Shown here piece by piece: positions 4,507 to 64,000 of a stretch of DNA of 64,000 nucleotides (position 1 is its first letter; each line of letters starts with the position of its first letter). The DNA comes from Sminthopsis crassicaudata. Taxonomy: Eukaryota. The notes under the pieces were generated by a model that saw only the letters and a program-made list of their open reading frames with translations, made no database searches and had not been told where the DNA came from. The stretch is taken from positions 373,393,261-373,457,260 of the forward strand of contig NC_133620.1 in NCBI RefSeq assembly GCF_048593235.1. The letters run 5' to 3'. A program made the position numbers and the translations under genes.

Positions 4507-5627
4507 ATGGGGAGCCCTGAAGATGATCTCATTGGGATTCCCTTCCCAGATCACAGCAGTGAGCTCCTCAGCTGTCTGAATGAGCAGCGCCAGCTGGGCC
4601 AGCTGTGCGATCTCACCATCCGAACCCAAGGCCTAGAGTACCGAACCCATCGGGCAGTGCTGGCTGCCTGCAGCCACTATTTTAAGAAACTCTTCACTGA
4701 GGGAGGCGGGGGCACAGGTACCAGTGGTGGAATGGCCGCCTCCGCGGGTGCTGGCGTCTGTGAACTGGACTTTGTGGGGCCTGAAGCACTGGGGGCCTTG
4801 CTTGAGTTTGCCTACACAGCCACCCTCACCACCAGCAGCGCCAACATGCCTGCTGTCCTCCAGGCGGCGAGACTGCTGGAGATCCCCTGTGTCATTGCTG
4901 CCTGTGTGGAAATCCTGCAGGGGAGTGGGCTGGAAGCCCCTGGTCCTGATGAAGATGACTGTGAGAGAGCCCGCCAGTACCTGGAGGCCTTTGCAACTGT
5001 GGGCACTCGGGTGCCCAATGGGGATGACAGTCCCCTCCCAGCCCCTCTTCCACCACCACCGCCCCCGACACGGCCTGTTCCTCGACGAAGCCGAAAGCCC
5101 CGAAAAGCCTTTTTGCAGACAAAGAGGCCTCAAACCAACCATCTGGCAACTGATGTGGCTGCCATTCACCCCCACCCCTTTACCTACCCAGATGAGGAAG
5201 AGGCAACAAGTGGCATTGGGCTAGGTGATGGCTATAGCCCCCCTGGTGGGGCCAGGTCACCCCCTGAGGGGCACCCGGGCTATGAAGGATATGAGGGGGA
5301 GGAAGAAGAGGAAGACCTGGTGTATCCGCCAACATATGGTCTGGCTCAGAGCGGAGCGCCCCCCCTATCCCCTGAAGAGCTGGGCTCAGATGAAGATGCC
5401 ATTGACCCCGACCTGATGGCCTATCTGAGTTCCCTGAACCACGAAGCCCTCACACCGGGGATAGATGGCCAGGACAAACTGGTACGCAAGCGTCGTTCCC
5501 AGATGCCCCAAGAATGTCCTGTTTGCCACAAGATCATTCACGGGGCGGGCAAGTTACCCCGACACATGCGGACCCACACTGGTGAGAAGCCTTTTGCCTG
5601 CGAAGTCTGTGGAGTCAGATTCACCAG
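4507..5627 (+). CDS. ZBTB7B: ZBTB7B first coding exon (BTB domain to ZF2)
   Basis: ATG at 4507, 6 nt after the acceptor; ends ttc acc ag|gtgaat. Confidence 0.97.
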
Positions 5628-6822
5628 GTGAATTTCCGCGGGGGTAAAGAGGGGCAAGAGGGTACAGGAGAGTGCCATACTCACTGAGGACCCAGGAAGG
5701 GGAGGAGCCCCGGGTGGAATCCCCAGCCTAGGGAGGACTATACAGGGATGTAGAGGAAGTGGAGAGAGGGACAGAGGAAGGGGGCAAAAAGGCCAAAATG
5801 AACAGTTTGGATACTGCAATAGGGCAGATGGGGACCAGGCAGATGAAGAACAGAATGAAGCTAAAATGGATTGTTGTTTATCCTTTCTCATAGTGGGGCA
5901 GGACACCAGGGAGGCAATCCCATGAAATGCTAGGGAGGTGGCTTAAGTCACCGGCCTCACTTCCCCCTCCAGAGCCATTCGGGTCCAGGAGGCCAGATGA
6001 AGATCAGGACAATGCACGTGGCTCTGGATGCAGTGGGAGACCTTGGCCTTTTAAACTGAGGTCCCCCCAGATCTCACTTTGAGGCAATGCCTTTCAGTGA
6101 TTAAGGCTAGGTACAAATGAGGCCAAAATGGGAGGGAAATCAGGAAGCCCAGTGCCTGAGGACAGAGCTACAGGGAGGAGGAGGAGGAGGATGGTGGTGA
6201 TGATGGAGCAGAAGTGAGAGCAGGGCTGAGGGGAAAGGTAAACATGTACAGAAATCAGGTTAGTGGGGCGTCTGCGAGGCCACAAGGACTTTTCCAGGCC
6301 TTATTCTCACCTGCAGATGCTTACCCTATCTCTTCTACCCCCCCACCCCTCTCTAGGAACGACAAGCTGAAGATCCACATGAGGAAGCATACTGGTGAAC
6401 GGCCATACTCGTGCCCACACTGCCCGGCGCGCTTCCTCCACAGCTATGACCTCAAGAACCACATGCACCTGCACACAGGCGACCGGCCCTTCGAATGCCA
6501 CCTGTGCCACAAGGCCTTCGCCAAGGAGGACCACCTGCAGCGCCACTTGAAGGGCCAAAACTGCTTGGAGGTCCGGACCCGCCGACGAAGAAAAGATGAT
6601 GCACCTCCCCACTACCCCCCACCCCAGGCACCCACCCCAGCCGGCCCTGGCCTTGACCTTTCCAACGGGCATCTGGATGACTTCCGCCTCTCTCTGGCAC
6701 GTTTCTGGGAGCAGCCAGCCAGGGCCGTGCCTCCTCCTCCTCCCCCAGGGCCTCCCGAAGAAGATGAGGAGGAGGGGGCACCAACCACCCCCCAGGCCGA
6801 GGGTGCCATGGAATCCTCTTAA
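4507..6822 (+). CDS. ZBTB7B: ZBTB7B (ThPOK/cKrox), BTB-POZ plus four C2H2 zinc fingers; join(4507..5627,6357..6822), 528 aa
   Basis: [42 protein letters not shown] (BTB domain); zinc fingers [21 protein letters not shown] onward; C-terminus EGAMESS*. Acceptor ctgcag ends at 4500; phase-2 GT-AG intron 5628-6356. Confidence 0.98.
6357..6822 (+). CDS. ZBTB7B: ZBTB7B last coding exon (ZF2 end to ZF4, acidic/Pro tail)
   Basis: ctctag|g aac gac aag: [18 protein letters not shown]...; TAA at 6820-6822. Confidence 0.97.
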
Positions 6823-6988
6823 ATGGGAAAAGGAGCTGGACTAGGGCGGAGTCCCAGGGTGGGCACCGATGCCAAGGAATGGGAGGGCTCTGGAGCAGAC
6901 TGTCCTGGGTGGGTCAGGGGAACTTTGCCAGACTCGGCTCCTCTGTAACTTGGCAGCTCCCAGTTTGTTCCCCCCACCAAGGGGCGAT

Positions 6989-6990
6989 AA

Positions 6991-7025
<35 letters not shown>

Positions 7026-7035
7026 GAATATTTTG

Positions 7036-7066
<31 letters not shown>
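6989..7066. repeat. (TA)n/(CA)n microsatellite in the ZBTB7B 3' UTR
   Basis: Seen directly. Confidence 0.95.
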
Positions 7067-8819: not shown

Positions 8820-20541
<11,722 letters not shown>

Positions 20542-20611
20542 ATGGGAGGTAAACTGAGTCAAGCCAAGGAAACTGGCCTGAAAGAACAGAAAAAGAAACC
20601 ACCCAATACCA
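20542..20611 (+). CDS. DCST1: DCST1 coding exon 1
   Basis: [23 protein letters not shown]|gtaagt; phase matches the next exon; the sequence itself is poorly conserved. Confidence 0.8.
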
Positions 20612-23600
20612 GTAAGTCACCTTCTCAATTACACTTTCCCCTTCTTCCTCTCCTGATACTGTCTATTAATGTCCCCTCAGTCCCTGCCCCTTTTCCTTGG
20701 ATGTTCTCTCAGCCCCTGTGTCTGGGTGCTTACACTTTTACCTATAGTATCTCTACCTATTTTATATCCAGTTGAACACATCCAACCAAAGAAAAGTCAC
20801 TGGTTGTGTACTTTAGCTGACATGCCCATGTCAGTGAGGGGGCATTTTAGCAAAACATTCCTCCATAGCTCTGAATCGATTCCTGAGATGGATGCTGCCC
20901 GTTCCCTGTGCCCGGTTTGTATGGAGAAAGCCGGGAGAGTTTCCTGTCACTTCATTCCTACTGGGAGCTGGCACTGGAGGGCTCCTAGCTGTGGGTAAGT
21001 AGGTCACAGAACCACAGAATCCAAGAATCTGGGAGCTGGAAGTGACCTAGGTTTCCTTCTAGTCCAGCACATAACAAAAGACCTTCCTACTATAATGTAT
21101 CTGATAAATGATCATCCACTTCAAGGCCTCAAATGAGGGAGAAACTCACCACTTCAATCAATTCTACTTTTCACTGATTGTTAGGAAGTTCTTTCCTGAC
21201 ATCAAGCTTAAATTGAACACTTTGCAACTGCTACCCTTTATTTCTATTTATGCCCTCTGCCATTCACACAGCAGCCTTTCAAATATTTAGAGACAGCTAG
21301 AGTCTCTGGGTCTTCCGTTCTCCAAATGCCTTCAGTCCAGTTGTTTCAGCCTATCCTTTTATATCATGAACTAAAGACTCTTCATCTTGGATGTCCTCTA
21401 AACACTCTGCAAGTTCTCAATTTCCTTCTTAAAACATCTCTTCCTCATCCCACTAGGGGTTATTTATAAGCAGAGAAGAAGGATTAAGTAAATAGCAGAC
21501 AGGGCTGGTTTCCTTTGAATGTTGACCTCTGATTCTCAGGTCTCACCCATATTTTGCTGACCCCCATAAACCTCTATGAAGAGCAGAAGATAATGTTGAC
21601 ATACGGCATAGTGGGTAAGTGAAAAAAAAAAAAGGGTCTGCAAGGGCCCATGTCATGGCAACAGTGTCCAAAGCAGTAAGTCTGCACTTAGCCATGAAGA
21701 TGCTTCCTGAGTCAAAACCTCCTCTAATGTGTGCTATGGGGAATCCAGATGTCCAAAGACAGAAGGCGTAGGGAAGCTCCCAATCTGATAGAAGTGACAG
21801 AATACTTCTGCCTAAAACACAGTGGAACACTGGAAGTAGGGCAGAATCATGGGCGGACAAGTGATTGAGTTGGATAAGTGATGCCGATGGTGGTGGTGTA
21901 GTAGTAGTAGTAGGGACAACATTTAAGGTTAACATTTAAGTGCTTTCACTTTACACATATTATCTTATTTGATCCTCAAAATGATTTTGCTAGGCTCTTG
22001 TTCACTTGTGTCTGCCTCTTCATTTGGGATTTTCTTGGGAAAAATACTGGAGTGGTTTGCTGATTCCCTCTGCACCTCATTTAATAGATGAGGAAACAGG
22101 ATTAAGTGACTTGCCCAAGATCATACAGCTGGTAAATTTCTGAAGTAGGATTTGAAATCAGGTGGTCTTGTCTGAAATCCACCCCGAGACACCTCTGGGG
22201 TGGGAGAAAGCAATAATGAGGGAAATGTTCTTAGGAAATGGGAATGGAGAACAGTTTTGTGAACAAGGAATCAGGCAGGGAAGAGAGGAGGAAGAGTGCC
22301 TTGGGGAAGACAGATTACAGAAATGAGTGTATGAGGTCTAGCTTCTCCTGCCTGAGATAGAGAATTAAATTGGAGCTCCTAATGGAGTAGAATTTCATGG
22401 ATCAGAGAAATGTGTAGCCAGAAGAAGCAGCAGCCTTCCAGCACTTGGGGTGGATTCCATGTGGAAAAATTAATCAGAGAGAGAGAGGATGGAAGTGATC
22501 TGTACTGTAGGAGAGAATGTCCATATCCATGAGTCTGTGGATCTATTGATTATGTTTCTTTGTGCCTAGAAGTGTGCTTGACATTAAAGGAGGTATAGAA
22601 AACACCTCCCCTACTTCAGTGCTAGGGCAGGTAAGGGAGAGCTCTTAGCAGGTTGAAATAGCCAAGGAACAAGACCAGCTGCAGGGTGGCAAAGCTCAGG
22701 AGGAATCTTGTAGATGGTCCAATAGATATTTGTCACCCCCCCCCAACTCTATTCTCTTATCTACTCTCTGGACAGGCTTGGGAGCCCTGGGCTGGAGCAT
22801 TTCCCCCTATATTCGTTGTGCCAGCATTCTGCTGGTCCCCAAAATGCTGGGCAAAGAGGGAAGGCTACTGATGCTCGGCTATGTACTGGCTGCTCTCTAT
22901 GAAGGTGAGTATCTGCCAGAAATTCAGCTGGGACGTGCTCTCAGGCAGTGGGCAGTCACTGGGAGGGCATTCAGTGGGAGAAGATGGAATGATAATAGAG
23001 CTAGCATCCCTTAATTTTCTAAAATTTACAAATAAAAAATAAAATTTTACAAATATTATTTCATTTTATCTTTACAACAACTTGTTGTTATTACCCCCAT
23101 CTTACAGATGAAGAAACCAGACAGCCAGAAATTATTGACTTACCCAGAGTGACTTAGCTAGCATGCTTCTGAGGCAGGATTTGGGCATCCAGATCCCAAG
23201 TCATGGGCGCTCTCTACTGTATCTCCTAGCTGTGTAAAGAACTCATCAGGATCATAGGATCTTAGATATTAGATCTTCAAGACATATTACAGATCTTTGA
23301 ATCCAAACCGCTCCTTTCACAAGGGAGAAAAATGAAAGCATGAGAGATTTGGCCAGGGTCACATTTCTGACAAGATTTGAAGAAATGCAAAGTATATTAT
23401 ACCCCAGGGTCACATATCCCGGGGTGCTGAGACAGGGATCAAGGTCAAAGTTGTAGCTAGTTAAAGGAAGAATTTTGGCCCCTCTCCCTCTGCCCCTTTC
23501 CTCTTTCAGGGCCTGTGGCCAATCTGCGGCACAATTTGAATGAAGTGGTGTTATCTCTGGGCTGTACGGTAGAACTTCAGATCAACCATACTCGAATGGC

Positions 23601-55895: not shown

Positions 55896-58699
55896 TTACC
55901 CACTTCTCAGTAACCCATTTTTGCATGAAAATTCTTCTATTCCTAAATTTGGACACATACATGTTATGTACATATGATCTTCATGCTGATGTTTGTATGT
56001 ATATAGATCCAAGTCAAATGCATATCTCCTTATTAGGACTTACACACTTCTGAATATACATCTTAGTGTCAGGAGATAGTTGTGCTTCTCTTCTTGTTGG
56101 AACACATGTCTCCATATTATGACACACATGTGATTGTGTATTGGTAAGCATGTGTGGGTCCTGTGATAGAGGTGCAGAGCCTGTGAATATTTCATGCCCA
56201 GAGCTGGCGGCTGCCTCTCCTGCTTACACTCTTGCCTGCTCTTCTCTGTCTCCAGCGCCTGTGTTTATTTGTTTAATGAATTATTTATCCATAGCCCCCC
56301 CTTCCCCCTAACCTCCCCCTCCCCCAGGCCCCAGCCTCTATGATTTATTGAACACGGCTCAGCTCTGCGGTTGCCACCCGCTGTCCCAGGAGCTGCCTCT
56401 GGCCATGCCAGCCAGAGAGCTTCTCTTTCCCATAGACCTGCTCACCTCCTTGTGACTCTAGGCACAAGCTGGGAGATCACTACAAGCAGAATCTCACTAT
56501 TCTAGGTAGGAAGTCAGGAAAATGGGAGAATGCCTTGAAGGTTTTGGAGTCAGGAAGGGTGGAAAGAATACCTGAGGATTGTTGAGGGAGATGCTCTAAT
56601 AGCTAGATGCCCAGACCTTATAGAGAAAGTCTTAGATCTTGGAGAAGGCTGAAACTACAAAGAAGGACCTAACTTAGTTAATCATGGGACCAGGCCCAAG
56701 GAAATCTCCAATCTCACAGAGAGATATTAAACTCCATGGCAATGAGCCCAATCCCTAGAGAGAATTCAACCCCTATAGAAAAAGGCCTTCTTCCTCTCCT
56801 CTCTATCATTGGAAGAGATGAAATTAGGAGTAAGGAGAGAAGTGAAGCTCCATTGCTGAAGGTCTTGGACTCCTGAGAGGTAAGCTATATAACAGCTGGC
56901 AGCTGTTAACAAAAAAAGAAGAAAAAAAAAAAGACAATGTCTTATTGCCACAATATTTTAGTATTTACAAAATGGTCTCCCCCTAACAATCCTTCAAGGG
57001 AGGTCATGTAAGCATTATTACCATTTTTATTTTTATTATTTATTATCACTATGCAGAAAGAAACTGAGGGCCAGAGAAATACCTAGTCCATGGCACCCAG
57101 CTAGTAAGTATAACTGACAAAACTTGAATTCAGGTCTAATTCCTGGTCCAGTTCTCCTTCCATTATAGCCATCTGTCTTGGGAAAAACTATAAGAAGTTC
57201 TCAGGAGAGGGAAGGGGAGGCTGTTTGTGAAGTTCCCTCCAAATCACCCCAAGGGGCCTAATTTATCTTCTGATTTCTTAGGAGGGAGAGGAGATCCCCT
57301 AGAGGTAAGGGAGAGTCCAGGGACAACACTGTCAGCTCTTGCCTGCTTGCTGGGCAGCAACTGGGCACAGTGCCCATTCTGGTTGGCACTGCCTACCAGG
57401 CACTTATGGAAGGCACGTGATTCACACACCCTGATCCTGACGCTTTTTAATTGTGGGCATCAGGGTCAGGAGTATCCATGTGTGCCTATTTCTTGGGATA
57501 GCTGGGAATAGTGCCAGCTCCTGTGTGCACAGGGGTATGCCTAGGTTTCTAAGAACCATATCACCTCACCCACTAGCCCGAGTCTCCCCATAAGGGGAGT
57601 GGGGCATATCCTTATTCCACATTCTTCATTCTTCTTCCTGACTTTAGGGTTAAAGAAAGGGAGAGAAGAGGAAAAGGAAGAAAAGGGGGAGAAATGGAAG
57701 AGCAGGGTAAACAGAAGTGTGTGCCAGCTGTGGGCATGTGTTTCTGTTTTTTGTGTTAGAGGAACTGTATGTCTCAGCATAATTGCGTGTACAGGGACTG
57801 TGTTAAAAAACCTGATTTGTGGCCTATGCTCTGCCCTTTGTGCGTCTGCATTTGGGTGCCTGTGAGTGTGTGTGTGTGGAAAGTCCAGGTACCACTGGAG
57901 GGGGGAGCCCAAGGGGCCTGTGTCAGAGTAAGACTAACTACTTGGGTGTCCCTTCTTAATGACGCCTTCTGCATGTTTTAGGAATTGCCCCTGGACTCTG
58001 ACTCAGAATGGGTCCTGTTGAGCTTAGAGCTCCCTCCTCCTTTCCCATCACTACTGTACCCCTTTGCCTAGTCAGAGGGGTCTCCTCTCCTCAATCCTAG
58101 CATTCCTGGGACCCCAGTGACCCTTAGCTTACTGGCCTCCCCTATCCCACCCCTGCACCTCCTGCCCATCTGTCTGAGAAAGGCCACCAGCTCACCAGCC
58201 CTTCGGCCCCTGGGGCCAGCCAATGGCATGTAGCAACTTCTCCTGGGCCAGGGTGTCTGCCCACCGTCCTCCCTATATTTTGCCTCTCCCCTCTAAGGAT
58301 AGGCAAGGGGAGAAAACAGAAAGGGGAGGATTGTAGATATGTAAAGCGCCTTGCAAAGCTTAAAACTCTATAAAGGAGTAAGCTATCATTGCTGTGGTGG
58401 CCGATTTTGTTGCTCTGCTTCTCTACGTCCTCAAAAGACATCCGTCTCCCATTCCCAGTCATTTCCTAGGTTAGAGACCTTGGGGTTTTCTCCGGCCCTC
58501 CCCACCCCCCCCCCACCCCCCCCCCCCGCACTCAGATCTTCCAATTTAGCAGAGGGACAAACTGCTCAGTCTTAGGGCTGAAGCTTGAATTAGCTCAGAC
58601 CCACCCAGTCCCGGAGGGGAGGAGAGAGTCCTGGCTTCTAGCCTCCCAATCTCTTCCCTTGGGGAATTCCTTTTTGGAAGCGGAGGTCTGTAAACCCTT

Positions 58700-59700
58700 T
58701 TGGTAGCATCTCAAATCGAGGTAGGGGAAGAGGAGGAGGAGCATGAGCGCGTTCCCGAGAGGGGAGGGAAGCCCGGGTCTCCATCTCCCACGCGCCGCGC
58801 GAGCCCGGGCGGGGAAGGAGAGGGGCGGGGCCTTTGGGTGGGTGGGCGCGCGCCGGGGGCGGGGCGTCGGGGGCGCGCCGGGCGAGCGGAGGGGGAAGGG
58901 TGGGGGCGTGGCCTAGGGCTCGGGGGCCGGCGGCGGCGGCGGCGGCAGCAGCAGGGAGCTGGGAAACGGAGAAGCGGGGAGCGGAGCTCAGTCGGGGGGC
59001 GGCGGCGGCGGCGGCTCCGGGGATGGCGGCGGCTCCGCTGCTGCTGCTGCTGCTGCTGGTGCCCGTGCCGCTGCTGCCGCTGCTGGCCCAGGGGCCCGGG
59101 GGGGCGCTGGGGAACCGGCATGCGGTGTACTGGAACAGCTCCAACCAGCAGTGAGTCCGAGGGAACCCGGGGACCCCGGGGAGGGCGGGGGTTCGGAAGA
59201 AGCTAGGGCCCGGAGAAGGGCAGATCGGGAGGCGCCGGGGGCAATCTTGGAAGATGGGGGTGAGGGGCATCAGGAGTCTAGGAGGGATGCAAAGAGAGGC
59301 CTGGGAGGGGGGGTCGGAGTAGGTCGGAAAGAAGGGGGCGCTGGAGACATTGGGGGGCGCGCGGGGTGGAGAAGCCTGGAGAGCAGGGCATCGGGTTCTT
59401 GGGATGCGAGCGCTGGAGAAATCGGGGCCGGTTCGTAGGGAGGGAGGGAGAGGGCGCTGGGGGCGTCTGGGAAGACTCAAGGGGAGTATCTGAGGGCGCT
59501 GATTTAGGAGGTTGGGGAGCAGTAGCGTAGGGGGATGTGCTAAGGAAGCTGTTCAGATCCCGGAACCCCTTTCCCTCTCCATTTCTCCCGGCACCACACA
59601 GCGGGAGTCGCACGCCCCCGTCCTACATCCCCACCCTCCTTCCCCGCCCCCGCGCTTGGTCAAGGGGCCCGGATTTGGGGGTGTCTGGGAAGCCCTGGAA
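58700..59700. promoter_or_regulatory. CpG island: EFNA3 promoter
   Basis: GC boxes and (GGC)n runs upstream of the ATG at 59023. Confidence 0.85.
59023..59150 (+). CDS. EFNA3: Ephrin-A3 exon 1 (gene continues past the window end)
   Basis: MAAAPLLLLLLLVPVPLLPLLAQGPGGALGNRHAVYWNSSNQ ca|gtgagt. Exon 2 was not found before 64000. Confidence 0.96.
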
Positions 59701-61459
59701 GGAGAGACCAACTTAGGGAAGGCAGATTTCAGAAGGCCATTGACCTGTTTTTATTTAGGAGGATGTTTCAGAGCCATGTTTGGGGTTCTTTCTGTCTCAT
59801 CTCTTCAAAGTGGGGGGCGAGGGACGGGGGGGGGGGTTGAGTTGTCTCTATCTTTGAATCTTCCCGAGAGGACAGGAAAAATGTGTGTTATGGTGTCTAT
59901 GTGAATGTCAGCTTCTGAGTGTGTGGGTTGTGTCGCTGACTTGGGGTACCTTGCCTGGACTCGCTGTTCGCTCTAGAATGAGAGCTGTGGGGCAATGGAA
60001 AGATAGAGAGATATGGAGGATGAAGCGTTGGGGAGGGGGGGCTGTCATGTCACAAACACACTCAGCTTGGAGATGGTGTGTGTGTGTGTGTGTGTGTGCC
60101 TCTAAGTGTGAGCGGGCGTGCGCCGCTGTCAATGTGCGTGTGTCTGAGTGTGTGATTTGTGTGTCTGCGTCGACGATGGTGTCTGGGGGTAGGGTGGGGG
60201 TGATGGCAGGAGGGGGCTGTCAGCCTGTTGGGGAAGGGGCGGTCAGGGTCCATTTAGGGATGTGTGTGGAGAATGGAAGTGTGTGGTTATGCCTGAGTTC
60301 GTGCGGTTGTCAGTGTCTCGGTCTCCGGGATACGTGTGTGGTACGTCTGGGTCAGGTTGTGTATGTTTTCCTCGGGTGTGTATGCTGGGCGTTTGTGGTT
60401 GTGTGTTTCGGCTGGGCTTGTCACTGTGTCTGCTGTGCCCTGGCTATTCATCTTCGTGTGGTTGTGTGGCCCGGTTCTGTATGTCAGTCCTTGCTTCTCC
60501 CTCACTCTTCGCTGCCCTTGTTTCCTCCTCCCCACGGAGCTACTGTGTGTATCGCCCTCCCTTCTTCTGAGTGTTGAGTGTGTATGTGGGGGTGGGGGGT
60601 CTGTCCCTAGGGGCGCGAGGGGGGGGAGAAAGTATAAGGGGAGCTCACTGTCACACCTGCCTGGGCGGCGACGCGAGAAGCTCTGGATATTACCCCCCCC
60701 CCGCCCAAGGGAAGAGGATGGCTTGGGGAGCAAACCGTAATGCCCTAGAGGGAGGGGGCCCTGGAGAGCAGAGCAGTCCCGACCCCCAACCTCCCAGGGG
60801 AGGGGCTGCCTCGCGCGGCTTCGTTCTTTGTTGTTTTGGGCTCAGCGGCTCCCCCTCCTCCTAGCGCCCGGAGTGTCAGACTGGGGGGTGGGGTGGGGAT
60901 GAGCCAACACCCCCCCCCACAATCTTGGAAATCTGAAGTGGTGGAGCATTTGTCTAGGCGTGCCCCCTCCCCCAGCGAGAAAGGGAGCGCTCCTAAGGGC
61001 TAGAGGAAATGATGGGGGGATAAGATGGCTCCCCCTCCCCACTTTTCTCTTCTCTCCCCCACCCCTGGGCACGCACGCCTCTCCGCCCCTCTAGAGTCTG
61101 GTGGAGAGTCGGGAGCGCGTTGGTAAGGGGGCTCTCGGGTCTTCCAGCTGCCCTTAAGGGCCCGCCCGCTTTGAAAGGAGATGGTAATGGTGGGGGGACG
61201 CAGGATGTGATCCTAAAGGGTTGGTGGTGGGAAGGTCAGGGCCTCCCCCACCTGAGTACAGGTAATAATTCCAGGAAGGGAGTGGGGGCGATTTGGGCTG
61301 AGGTGGGGAGCTCTCCCCTTGGCTGCTCTGAATTGAAGAGTGTCGGGTGAGGAGGGGAACGTGTCCTAGGGGCGAGGAGGGCACCGCCCCCCCCTCCTTG
61401 CTTCCCTCGGCCTTTGTTGCCGCTGCGCCCGGGCTCCCCGGCTCCCTCACTGCGGCAGC

Positions 61460-61830
61460 CGCGGCCCCATAAATCGTGAGAGCGACGTGCTCCGGAGCCG
61501 GGAGAAGAGAGGGCCGGGGAGCTGGGGGCGGGGAGCAGGAGAGCTTGGGGGCGGGGCCCTACTGAGCCACAGGCTTCCACCCCCCCCACCCCCACCCCCA
61601 CTCACACCCCCCCACCTCCACCCGGGGTCACGTGGGGAGGGGCTTCATTTGCCACCCCCGGATCACGTGGGAAGGGTCTCTGGCCCCCTTGGGGGTCACG
61701 TGGGGAGGGCCCTTGCTATCCCGCCCCCTAGAGGTCACGTGGGAAGGGTCTTTATATCCACCCCCTCTTCAGTTTCCCCCCCCTTCAGTTAAGTTAAGAG
61801 GGTCTGTCACCTAATGAGGTCACGTTGGGG
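61460..61830. promoter_or_regulatory. E-box/HRE tandem array in EFNA3 intron 1 (candidate internal promoter or enhancer)
   Basis: TCACGTG-GG with the CACGTG at 61629, 61664, 61697, 61736; CACGTT at 61821; GACGTG at 61484. Confidence 0.6.
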
Positions 61831-64000
61831 GTGGGCAGCCAGGGGGCAAAGAGGCACACGTTTCTAGGTCCAAAAGCCTTTTATATATGTGCCCCATAGT
61901 GGGGGCACAGTCTGGCCAGAGGCTGCACCTGCTGGGCAGACTGGCCAAAGTGAAGAGGGCTATGTGTAAAGGGTATGGAAGTGGAGGGCGGTAAGAGGAG
62001 ATGGAAGGGACCTAGATTGTGGGCTAGCCCACAATTGTGGGTTGTTGGTAGCCCACAATCCCAGGAATTGAGGAGTTTGGCAGAGGACAAGGCTGGGGTT
62101 CTCTGGGTCTCCTATCCTTGTGCGTGTGTAGCTCCGGTCTCTTGGCTTTCCAACCCTGCCAATTTCTTGGTCTGTGTCTATTAGTATCTCACACCGAGCT
62201 TGTCTCTTTCTCTGCCTTGGTTTCGGTCTCTCCACCTTTGCCTACGCTTCGGTTCCGATTTCTGCCTCTGTTCTCTGCTTGCGAACCTCTGCCTCGCTCG
62301 GGCTCTTCTCCTATGTCCCTGGCAGCTTCCCTCGCTGTGCCACTGTCTTTGCTTCTGTTCCTGTCTCTCCTGTCTCTGACTCTCTGCTTCAGTCTCTGTG
62401 TGTCTCTCCGCTCCTCTCCGCCGCTGCAGATCAATAAACCTTCGCCGCCGCCGCTGCTGTCGCAGGGAGGAGGGGGCGGTGGGGGGCGGGCGGTGCTAAT
62501 TCTCCGCCCCCAGTCGGGGTAGGGGGAAGTCCGGGGCATAGACCCGGCGCTGTGAGGATGGGAGGGAGGCGAGCCTTTGCAGGGAAGAGGTTCTTCACGG
62601 TCTCCCGGGGATCTGGGGCCTTTCTATTGGGATGCTCCCGCGGGGATGTTGGGACGACCCAGGGTGGGGTGGGTTGGATAGGAGGGCGCCTAAACGTGCA
62701 CGCGCGCCCAAGGGAGCGTTCTCGCCCCCTCTCTTCTCCCACCCGGGAGAACGCGCAGACCCCCACGTCGCGCGCACGTGGCCCAAGCCTCTACCTGCTG
62801 TATGGAAAAACTGAAAGCGCTGCTGCGGGAGCGCGCAACGGAGCCGGCGCTCCAATGCCTAACGCCGGAGTAGGCAGATGAGAGAGCGACGTTTTGGTAT
62901 TCCTTCTCTCTTTCTTTAGTCGCCCTATTTCTCAGCTCCTCCCCTCTGCACCCCAGAGTTCTTCTTTGCTATTATGGTGGGGGCGTGTAGGGAATTTAAC
63001 AAGTCCCCAGGCATCCTCTTGGCCCCCTCTCGCCTCGCGCAGCCCAGCCTGGCCTCGTTAGATGCCCTGTTTGTGCATCCCTAATTGCCCCGAGGGGAGA
63101 GACCCAAGCCTCTCCCATCCCGCCACTTCCCTCTGGGGGCATCTTAGTGTTTTAGTGTGAGGGCGGGGCCACAGCTTGAAAGTCAGAATGCTTGAGTCTC
63201 TCAGTCCCTAATCTGATGAGGGGACGGTCAGTACTCTAGAGGTGGCCATGGAGTTGGGCAGGCGATAGAGGGAGTGGTCCGCAAGCTGGTTTATAGCTCT
63301 AAGTAAAGGGATAGAAGGTGATGCTGGAGTAGTGATGGAGAGGTGGAAAGTAGAAAGAAAAAAAGTATTCTCTGGATATGACCAGAGACCTGCGTGGTTG
63401 AAATAATGGGGTGAGAGGTAGTATAGCAAGAGGGGACTGTGCCTAGCCTTGATCTGAGAGGGGGAGGTGAGAGGTACCGGGCTAGGAGAACCCAATGTTG
63501 GGGCTCTCGGTGTTCATGGAGGAAAGAGAAGAGGAAAAAGTGGAATAAAAACAATTGGTTTTAAGGCGCTCGGGTCTGGGTCCCTCTTCCCCGCCTACAC
63601 ACCAGGCTCCCTTGAGGGCTTAGTTTAGCTTCTTTGGGAACTGGAAGGGGGTAGTCAAGGCAGTTCCCCTCCCCACAACCCTGGGAAGGGAGTAGGACTG
63701 ACAGTTTCAATTAAAGTGCTGAATTAAATCCTACGCCTCCCTGGCGTAGCGGCTGGGGAAGCCTGGCACCCGCCCCTCCCCCACCAGATGCCAATTGGAC
63801 ACAAATCTTTGACAGGGAGACTGTGATGGGCCCACTGCCCACTTGGTGGGGATGGGGGGGAGGAAATTTAGGGAATATTTTGAACGAGATTTACATTCTA
63901 TCCCATTCTGTATAAGGGGAGCTAACTGCTGCTGCTTAGGTCCCCTTTTATAAGGCTCTCATTGCCAGCTCCACTAATTAAGATGAGGCACCTGAAGAGT

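Follow-up and report, generated by a model that had tools for sequence, protein, structure and literature searches.

The first intron of EFNA3 in the dunnart Sminthopsis crassicaudata contains a real, non-random array of four E-boxes, and sequence comparison indicates that the array is therian-wide and has been selectively maintained for about 160 million years. It is probably a conserved cis-regulatory module, a cluster of bHLH-ZIP E-boxes of the USF or MiT/TFE type that serves an internal EFNA3 promoter region. The array thus reads as a homotypic site cluster at an alternative promoter, and the element in EFNA3 is apparently undescribed; among the papers available to the search, none paired EFNA3 with the E-box terms used.

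Gene context and loci compared

The analyzed DNA, hereafter the window, is a stretch of 64,000 nucleotides. A sequence-only reading of it had placed the array in EFNA3 intron 1, and this location is borne out by the coding sequence of exon 1 and by the opossum orthologue, which is in register:

59023..59150, + strand: coding part of EFNA3 exon 1, 42 codons plus 2 nt, with the donor GTGAGT at 59151

According to the list of open reading frames, this stretch encodes the signal peptide and the first conserved residues. The array lies 2.5 kb into intron 1, which is 7.9 kb long in the opossum orthologue, and EFNA3 exon 2 was not seen before the window ends at 64000. The peptide encoded by exon 1 does not differ between dunnart, rodents, and cetaceans, even in its signal peptide, and the exon 1 DNA of dunnart and opossum agrees at 96-97%; for a signal peptide, this is unusually strong conservation. 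Farther upstream, window positions 54774-54954 correspond, at 67-81% protein identity, to the exon with which the coding sequence of opossum EFNA3 isoforms X1 and X3 begins; that exon lies ~7 kb upstream of the canonical exon 1, between EFNA4 and EFNA3.

Orthologous loci were reached from the exon 1 open reading frame by way of a squirrel EFNA3 fragment, named EFNA3 proteins, and opossum isoform X1. The resulting set comprised opossum (L001), platypus (L002), eutherians (L003-L008), a turtle (L009), and a tenrec (L010), and held no human sequence. L003 and L004 are cetaceans, and L006 and L007 are Dipodomys merriami; L005 (GCA_030445035.2) we take to be armadillo. L003 carries the delphinid-specific N-terminal peptide of protein P0064 exactly and so comes from a delphinid or a very close relative. 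All comparisons of the window with the fetched loci were made by local alignment, with the runs of N in L010 and L004 kept, and exons were searched or mapped one by one, without a spliced protein model. Window positions 57910-64000 align to opossum 15829-21917 at 80% identity (over 6.3 kb), with the four CACGTG sites in register.

Four tandem units derived by duplication

The array consists of the following features:

61621..61751, + strand: E-box array, four tandem units (U1-U4), orthologous in opossum, kangaroo rats, L005, tenrec, and cetaceans
61628-61634, 61663-61669, 61696-61702, and 61735-61741, + strand: TCACGTG cores of U1-U4, each followed by a G-rich GGGRAGGG
61798..61845, + strand: decayed fifth unit, GGTCACGTT in dunnart and GGTCATGTT in opossum, in a block common to the two marsupials only

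The letters on which the sequence-only reading relied are present as placed. The four CACGTG sites start at 61629, 61664, 61697, and 61736 on the + strand, with spacings of 35, 33, and 39, and GACGTG (61484), AACGTG (61358), CATAAAT (61468), and gcg|gtaaga (61991) are found as well. Every E-box, read as GTCACGTGGG or ATCACGTGGG, is followed by a G-run, GGGAGGG or GGAAGGG; in terms of flanks, GT or AT stands 5' of CACGTG, and the 3' side is GGGGAGGG or GGAAGGG. The imperfect fifth E-box also exists, as GTCACGTT at 61819-61826 with a decayed CACGTT at 61821, and local alignment gave no alignable counterpart of this marsupial unit in eutherians.

Such a concentration of sites is far from what chance would produce. 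Across the window, CACGTG occurs 9 times against an expectation of 3.0 +/- 1.65, a count reached in 0 of 100 shuffles; between 61400 and 61900, 5000 dinucleotide-preserving shuffles gave a mean of 0.049 and a maximum of 2, against the 4 observed. A repeat search grouped U1-U4 as a single family of direct repeats, 24 nt long and 79-83% identical, which can be extended to 33 nt. As the shared sequence reaches 24-33 nt, well beyond the hexamer, the units arose by tandem duplication of an ancestral unit of ~35 bp and not independently. Tandem Repeats Finder, run on the window, did not call the array, since its copies are too degenerate and diverged.

Conservation of cores and spacing across mammals

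The opossum intron, in which a count of E-boxes had been proposed as a check, contains four: CACGTG at 19574, 19609, 19641, and 19679 (spacing 35, 32, and 38), each unit matching that of the dunnart. The eutherian sites lie at 7062, 7097, 7127, and 7164 in L005; at 21812, 21846, 21876, and 21914 in D. merriami; at 21829, 21863, 21893, and 21931 in L008; and at 5006, 5044, 5074, and 5111 in the tenrec. In these four-box eutherian loci (L005, L006, L007, L008, and L010) the spacings are 34-38, 30, and 37-38. The array spans 101-107 nt in the therians compared, with spacing kept to about 3 nt, and copy number is four in all non-cetacean therians sampled. The two cetaceans retain U1 and U4 intact, 101-102 nt apart, while U2 has become CACTTG and U3 CATGTG; with two of the four cores gone in this group, not all units can be indispensable. 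The array was not found by local alignment at the corresponding place in platypus or turtle.

By this comparison, the array is present in marsupials, Euarchontoglires, Laurasiatheria, and Afrotheria, and also in Xenarthra if L005 is indeed armadillo. Of the two alternatives that the sequence-only reading had offered, that the array is conserved or that it was amplified in this marsupial, the first holds unit by unit from opossum to eutherians. The second falls, since the same four units with the same spacing occur in opossum and in at least three eutherian superorders, and for the same reason the suggested link to marsupial oxygen biology is unsupported. A fifth CACGTG does occur 23 nt after U4 in L005 (7187), L008 (21954), and the tenrec (5134); marsupials have nothing corresponding to it, and in D. 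merriami and cetaceans it has decayed.

Conservation is concentrated in the binding-site letters. The TCACGTG cores of marsupials and non-cetacean eutherians agree at 96-100%, and 25-28 of the 28 core positions match when either marsupial is set against any eutherian. Over the 113 spacer positions, identity between marsupials and eutherians is 50-58%, a significant difference from the cores among the non-cetaceans (Fisher p 1.2e-7 to 3.5e-5). High conservation extends over much of the first 2.7 kb of intron 1, however, and a broader constraint could account for part of the signal. The 5' T of TCACGTG is invariant in every intact unit of all therians aligned, and conservation of the adjacent G-runs falls well below that of the cores. 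Retention of cores and spacing beside freely diverging spacers is as expected of protein-binding sites under purifying selection.

The units have also kept their identities. The same unit compared between dunnart and opossum is 0.92-1.00 identical for U1, U2, and U4 and 0.79 for U3, against 0.67-0.83 for different units within the dunnart, and the units are in register in all therians aligned. Greater likeness across species in three of the four units, together with the register, argues against concerted evolution or conversion and indicates that each core was kept independently.

These observations bear on one alternative, namely a neutral, degenerate minisatellite or a piece of some interspersed repeat with E-boxes in it by chance. 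Its tandem origin and its GC-rich, low-complexity surroundings would suit such a sequence. Its copy number is fixed, however, and nine other loci, ranging from opossum to tenrec, have orthologous units; the cores are conserved far above the spacers; and elsewhere in the window the only further copy of the unit is a single match with 1 mismatch, on the opposite strand. We regard this explanation as scarcely credible, and rejected it on the fixed copy number and the core-spacer contrast, Tandem Repeats Finder having found no array.

Two further candidates for the region were rejected. The open reading frame at 61487-61792 is broken between species by indels of 1, 4, and 23 nt, and as these are not multiples of three, a coding exon is ruled out. 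A structured RNA was rejected on a covariation term of +1.88 from RNAalifold, with 1 of 64 pairs compensatory; a search of Rfam returned only weak miRNA-like matches, far below the gathering score.

An older conserved core upstream of the array

Immediately upstream of the array lies a stretch of exceptional conservation:

61398..61475, + strand: 3'-terminal, invariant stretch of an alternative 5' exon ("exon B") with CAT AAA TC at its end, known from the N-termini of P0064 and P0034
61476..61490, + strand: GT splice donor GTGAGA followed by GACGTGC (HRE-type core); the exon modelled on L003 ends before this GT
61547..61558, + strand: GC box GGGGGCGGGGCC, invariant in all seven therian sequences

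Dunnart and opossum do not differ at any of the 108 nt of 61398-61505, and eutherians match 61370-61533 at 91-94%. This stretch is more conserved than the flanks of the neighboring coding exon 1. Some 2 kb into their intron 1, platypus and turtle also have the core GGCCCCATAAAT with GACGTGC after it: though without the array, both retain the upstream core CCCCATAAAT and GACGTGC. The GACGTGC at 61484-61490 is invariant in all therians compared, in platypus, and in turtle.

Exon B is known from annotated isoforms. Several EFNA3 isoforms begin with residues encoded outside exon 1. In white-beaked dolphin X3 and dromedary X2 (P0064 and P0034) these residues map to two additional exons, located on L003 at 6463-6645 (exon A) and at about 6853-6998 (exon B), after which both models go on in exon 2. 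In the window, the exon B boundary falls at 61475|61476, with GTGAGA directly after CAT AAA TC. Splicing of exon B is documented by cetartiodactyl gene models only, and a protein search for transcripts containing it returned the dolphin and camel isoforms and, beyond these, just two open reading frame calls without splicing. The cetartiodactyl exon B acceptor is absent in dunnart, L005, and kangaroo rats, and position +4 of the donor is C in L008 and platypus. Given the missing acceptor and the imperfectly conserved donor, the extreme conservation must reflect more than a splice signal. In the dunnart frame there is no ATG after the stop at 61348-61350, so any such exon would be non-coding in this species.

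Three elements of the sequence-only reading need qualification. The "TATA-like" CATAAAT is present, and in the dolphin and camel models it falls on the last codons and GT donor of an exon; besides marking an exon end it could act as a TATA-like box, though this is doubtful. Opossum has a deletion where the donor was proposed at 61991, and the opossum and therian alignments show no conservation of the AACGTG at 61358.

From the exon B donor to the start of the array there are 153 nt in dunnart and 97-98 nt in eutherians. This proximity raises the question of a role at the RNA level, with G-run intronic splicing enhancers or a structure aiding the donor at 61476. An array starting ~100-150 nt downstream of a conserved donor, after a stretch rich in GGG runs, would be in keeping with such a role. 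The conserved letters, however, are the palindromic TCACGTG cores and not the G-runs, a structure has no covariation support, and the donor itself is imperfectly conserved; we consider an RNA-level element very unlikely.

A proposed internal promoter region in intron 1

Two more conserved features lie on either side of the array:

60780..60908, + strand: highly conserved block just upstream of the exon A position, 98-100% identical to opossum
62775..62780, + strand: separate single E-box ~1 kb downstream of the array, conserved across therians

The block at 60780-60908 has long invariant runs among therians, and exon A of L003 lies immediately downstream of the orthologous block, which makes 60780-60908 a candidate core of the internal EFNA3 promoter. 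Other starts appear to exist in the intron. In pangolin, rhinoceros, and bats, EFNA3 isoforms use an N-terminal exon that maps to 63739-63859, a further alternative first exon, and other EFNA3 isoforms start just upstream of exon 2, outside the window. Since isoforms carry various intronic 5' exons, intron 1 holds several alternative start regions in mammals. An internal promoter, as the sequence-only reading had proposed, is thus favored by the 5' exons annotated just upstream of the array in other mammals, while the dunnart is without the cetartiodactyl exon B acceptor. The region is CpG-rich for a marsupial, and the array lies within ~1 kb of very highly conserved CpG-rich sequence.

Several other conserved sequences were seen in this part of the intron. 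The context of the single downstream E-box, CCACGTCGCGCGCACGTGG at 62760-62782, is kept in opossum and near-identical in the eutherians compared there, and 63584-63830 is 84-93% identical to opossum. An invariant therian block at 62417-62500 includes GCAGATCAATAAACCTT, which reads as an AATAAA motif or as a site of HOX/CDX type; after it come a CGC/GCC triplet repeat of species-dependent length and a conserved G-rich stretch. At 61250-61266, in the intron between exons A and B, CACCTG and CAGGT(G/A) form a facing, E2-box-like pair conserved in therians. Two invariant CTTTGTTG motifs, which we assume to be SOX-like, lie at 60820-60840 and 61408-61420, inside the conserved internal-promoter region.

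Factors that may occupy the array

The sites in question are class B E-boxes: palindromic, T-flanked CACGTG, four times over, in dunnart, opossum, L005-L008, and L010. T-flanked CACGTG (GGTCACGTGG or GGTCACGTGA) is the preferred site of USF1 and USF2, and TFE3, TFEB, MITF, and BHLHE40 also bind it. The 5' T separates sites of USF, TFE, and BHLHE40 from those of MYC/MAX and HES; MYC/MAX prefers C or G at the flank, and HIF prefers T or G before ACGTG. We assigned factors from these published preferences for USF, TFE, and HIF and not from a motif scan. The conserved letters, being the palindromic core and its 5' T and not the G-runs or spacers, point to recognition by a dimeric bHLH-ZIP protein. 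The bHLH-type E-boxes of the sequence-only reading fit these data: the sites are of class B with an ACGTG core, and their conservation unit by unit argues for function.

Our preferred model is as follows. A unit of ~35 bp was tandem-duplicated in the common ancestor of marsupials and placentals, either after the monotreme split or with later loss of the array in monotremes, to give four same-orientation class B E-boxes of consensus GGTCACGTGG, with a G-rich stretch after each. The four copies and their spacing (within about 3 nt) have been retained since then while the spacers diverged freely. The array would form the downstream, promoter-proximal part of the internal EFNA3 promoter region and would be occupied by dimeric bHLH-ZIP proteins, with USF1/USF2 the first candidates and MiT/TFE or BHLHE40 as alternatives. 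Bound factors would maintain the region in an open, active state and adjust the output of alternative EFNA3 transcripts. We rank constitutive USF-type occupancy first, with conditional factors possibly competing for the same sites.

The array resembles known clusters of USF and MiT/TFE E-boxes, such as CLEAR elements at TFEB targets and USF sites at CpG-island promoters, in having T-flanked CACGTG sites within ~110 bp, likewise near a transcription start region and in CpG-rich DNA. It differs from clusters of the CLEAR type in that EFNA3 is not a lysosomal gene and that its units are tandem-duplicated at a regular spacing of 30-39 bp. The sites also depart from the CLEAR 10-mer GTCACGTGAC, which U1, U3, and U4 of the dunnart (GTCACGTGGG) match at 8 of 10 letters and U2 (ATCACGTGGG) at 7 of 10; the eutherian U1, GTCACGTGAG, has 9 of the 10 letters of the CLEAR palindrome. 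Repeated CACGTG with conserved spacing is likewise a property of circadian E1-E2 elements (CLOCK-BMAL1) and of ChoREs (MondoA/ChREBP-MLX), but there the gaps are 5-7 bp and in the array the centers are 30-39 bp apart. With start-to-start spacing of 30-39 bp in all species, a circadian E1-E2 or ChoRE pair was rejected.

A different function for USF binding is suggested by analogy with the USF/VEZF1 barrier elements. Constitutive USF, together with G-run binders (MAZ, VEZF1, SP/KLF) on GGGRAGGG and GC boxes, would maintain a chromatin barrier or CpG island, keeping an internal CpG-rich region unmethylated and separating promoter domains while conferring no inducibility. An E-box and a G-rich run are indeed paired each time, the GC box upstream is invariant, and the CpGs of the E-boxes have survived about 160 My in a region that is CpG-rich for a marsupial. 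Because the G-runs next to the cores are far less conserved than the cores, we find such a barrier or maintenance role improbable.

The hypoxia response proposed by the sequence-only reading would have HIF-1/2 and ARNT act on the ACGTG cores of the E-boxes and drive hypoxia-induced internal EFNA3 transcripts, as for the human lncRNAs. Each CACGTG of the array includes ACGTG (the RCGTG core), and the array adjoins internal 5' exons. Human EFNA3 lends the idea further weight: according to reviews (PMC4880005, PMC5547530), the locus binds HIF directly and gives rise to lncRNAs from alternate promoters. The HIF-bound human promoters (Gomez-Maldonado et al. 2015, as relayed in PMC4880005 and PMC5547530) belong to the same gene and produce internal-promoter transcripts that share downstream exons, and the likeness extends to the ACGTG cores and to the internal 5' exons annotated beside the array in several mammals. 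In what those reviews relate, however, there is a single ACGTG HRE, ~295 nt from a human EFNA3 lncRNA start, as opposed to an array of four units. By its motif, HIF favors an ACGTG preceded by T or G, and a CACGTG flanked by T typifies USF and TFE. A better HIF-type candidate would be the amniote-invariant GACGTGC at 61484-61490, and HIF binding to the E-boxes, while possible, appears less likely than binding there. Taken as an account of the array itself, the hypoxia module is in our view doubtful, though less so than a barrier role, and a connection between the array and the human hypoxia-induced EFNA3 lncRNAs is tentative.

Conclusions

Homotypic clusters are common, but few are traceable unit by unit over 160 million years. 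In the EFNA3 array, cores and spacing are kept while spacers decay, a clean natural experiment on selection at each site, and the idea of the array as a marsupial adaptation is corrected. The element also narrows the search within EFNA3, whose internal hypoxia-induced transcripts are linked to metastasis in human, and offers specific letters for mutation, namely four TCACGTG cores and one older GACGTGC. On a more speculative view, which we put forward only tentatively, the four-copy USF/TFE-type array would be a therian innovation, added some 160-180 million years ago by tandem duplication beside an older amniote core (CCCCATAAAT plus GACGTGC) at an internal EFNA3 promoter, and would act with that core as an oxygen- or nutrient-sensing switch between coding EFNA3 mRNA and the internal transcripts known in human as hypoxia-induced lncRNAs. 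If this is true, the human hypoxia-lncRNA mechanism would gain a defined and deeply conserved DNA element.
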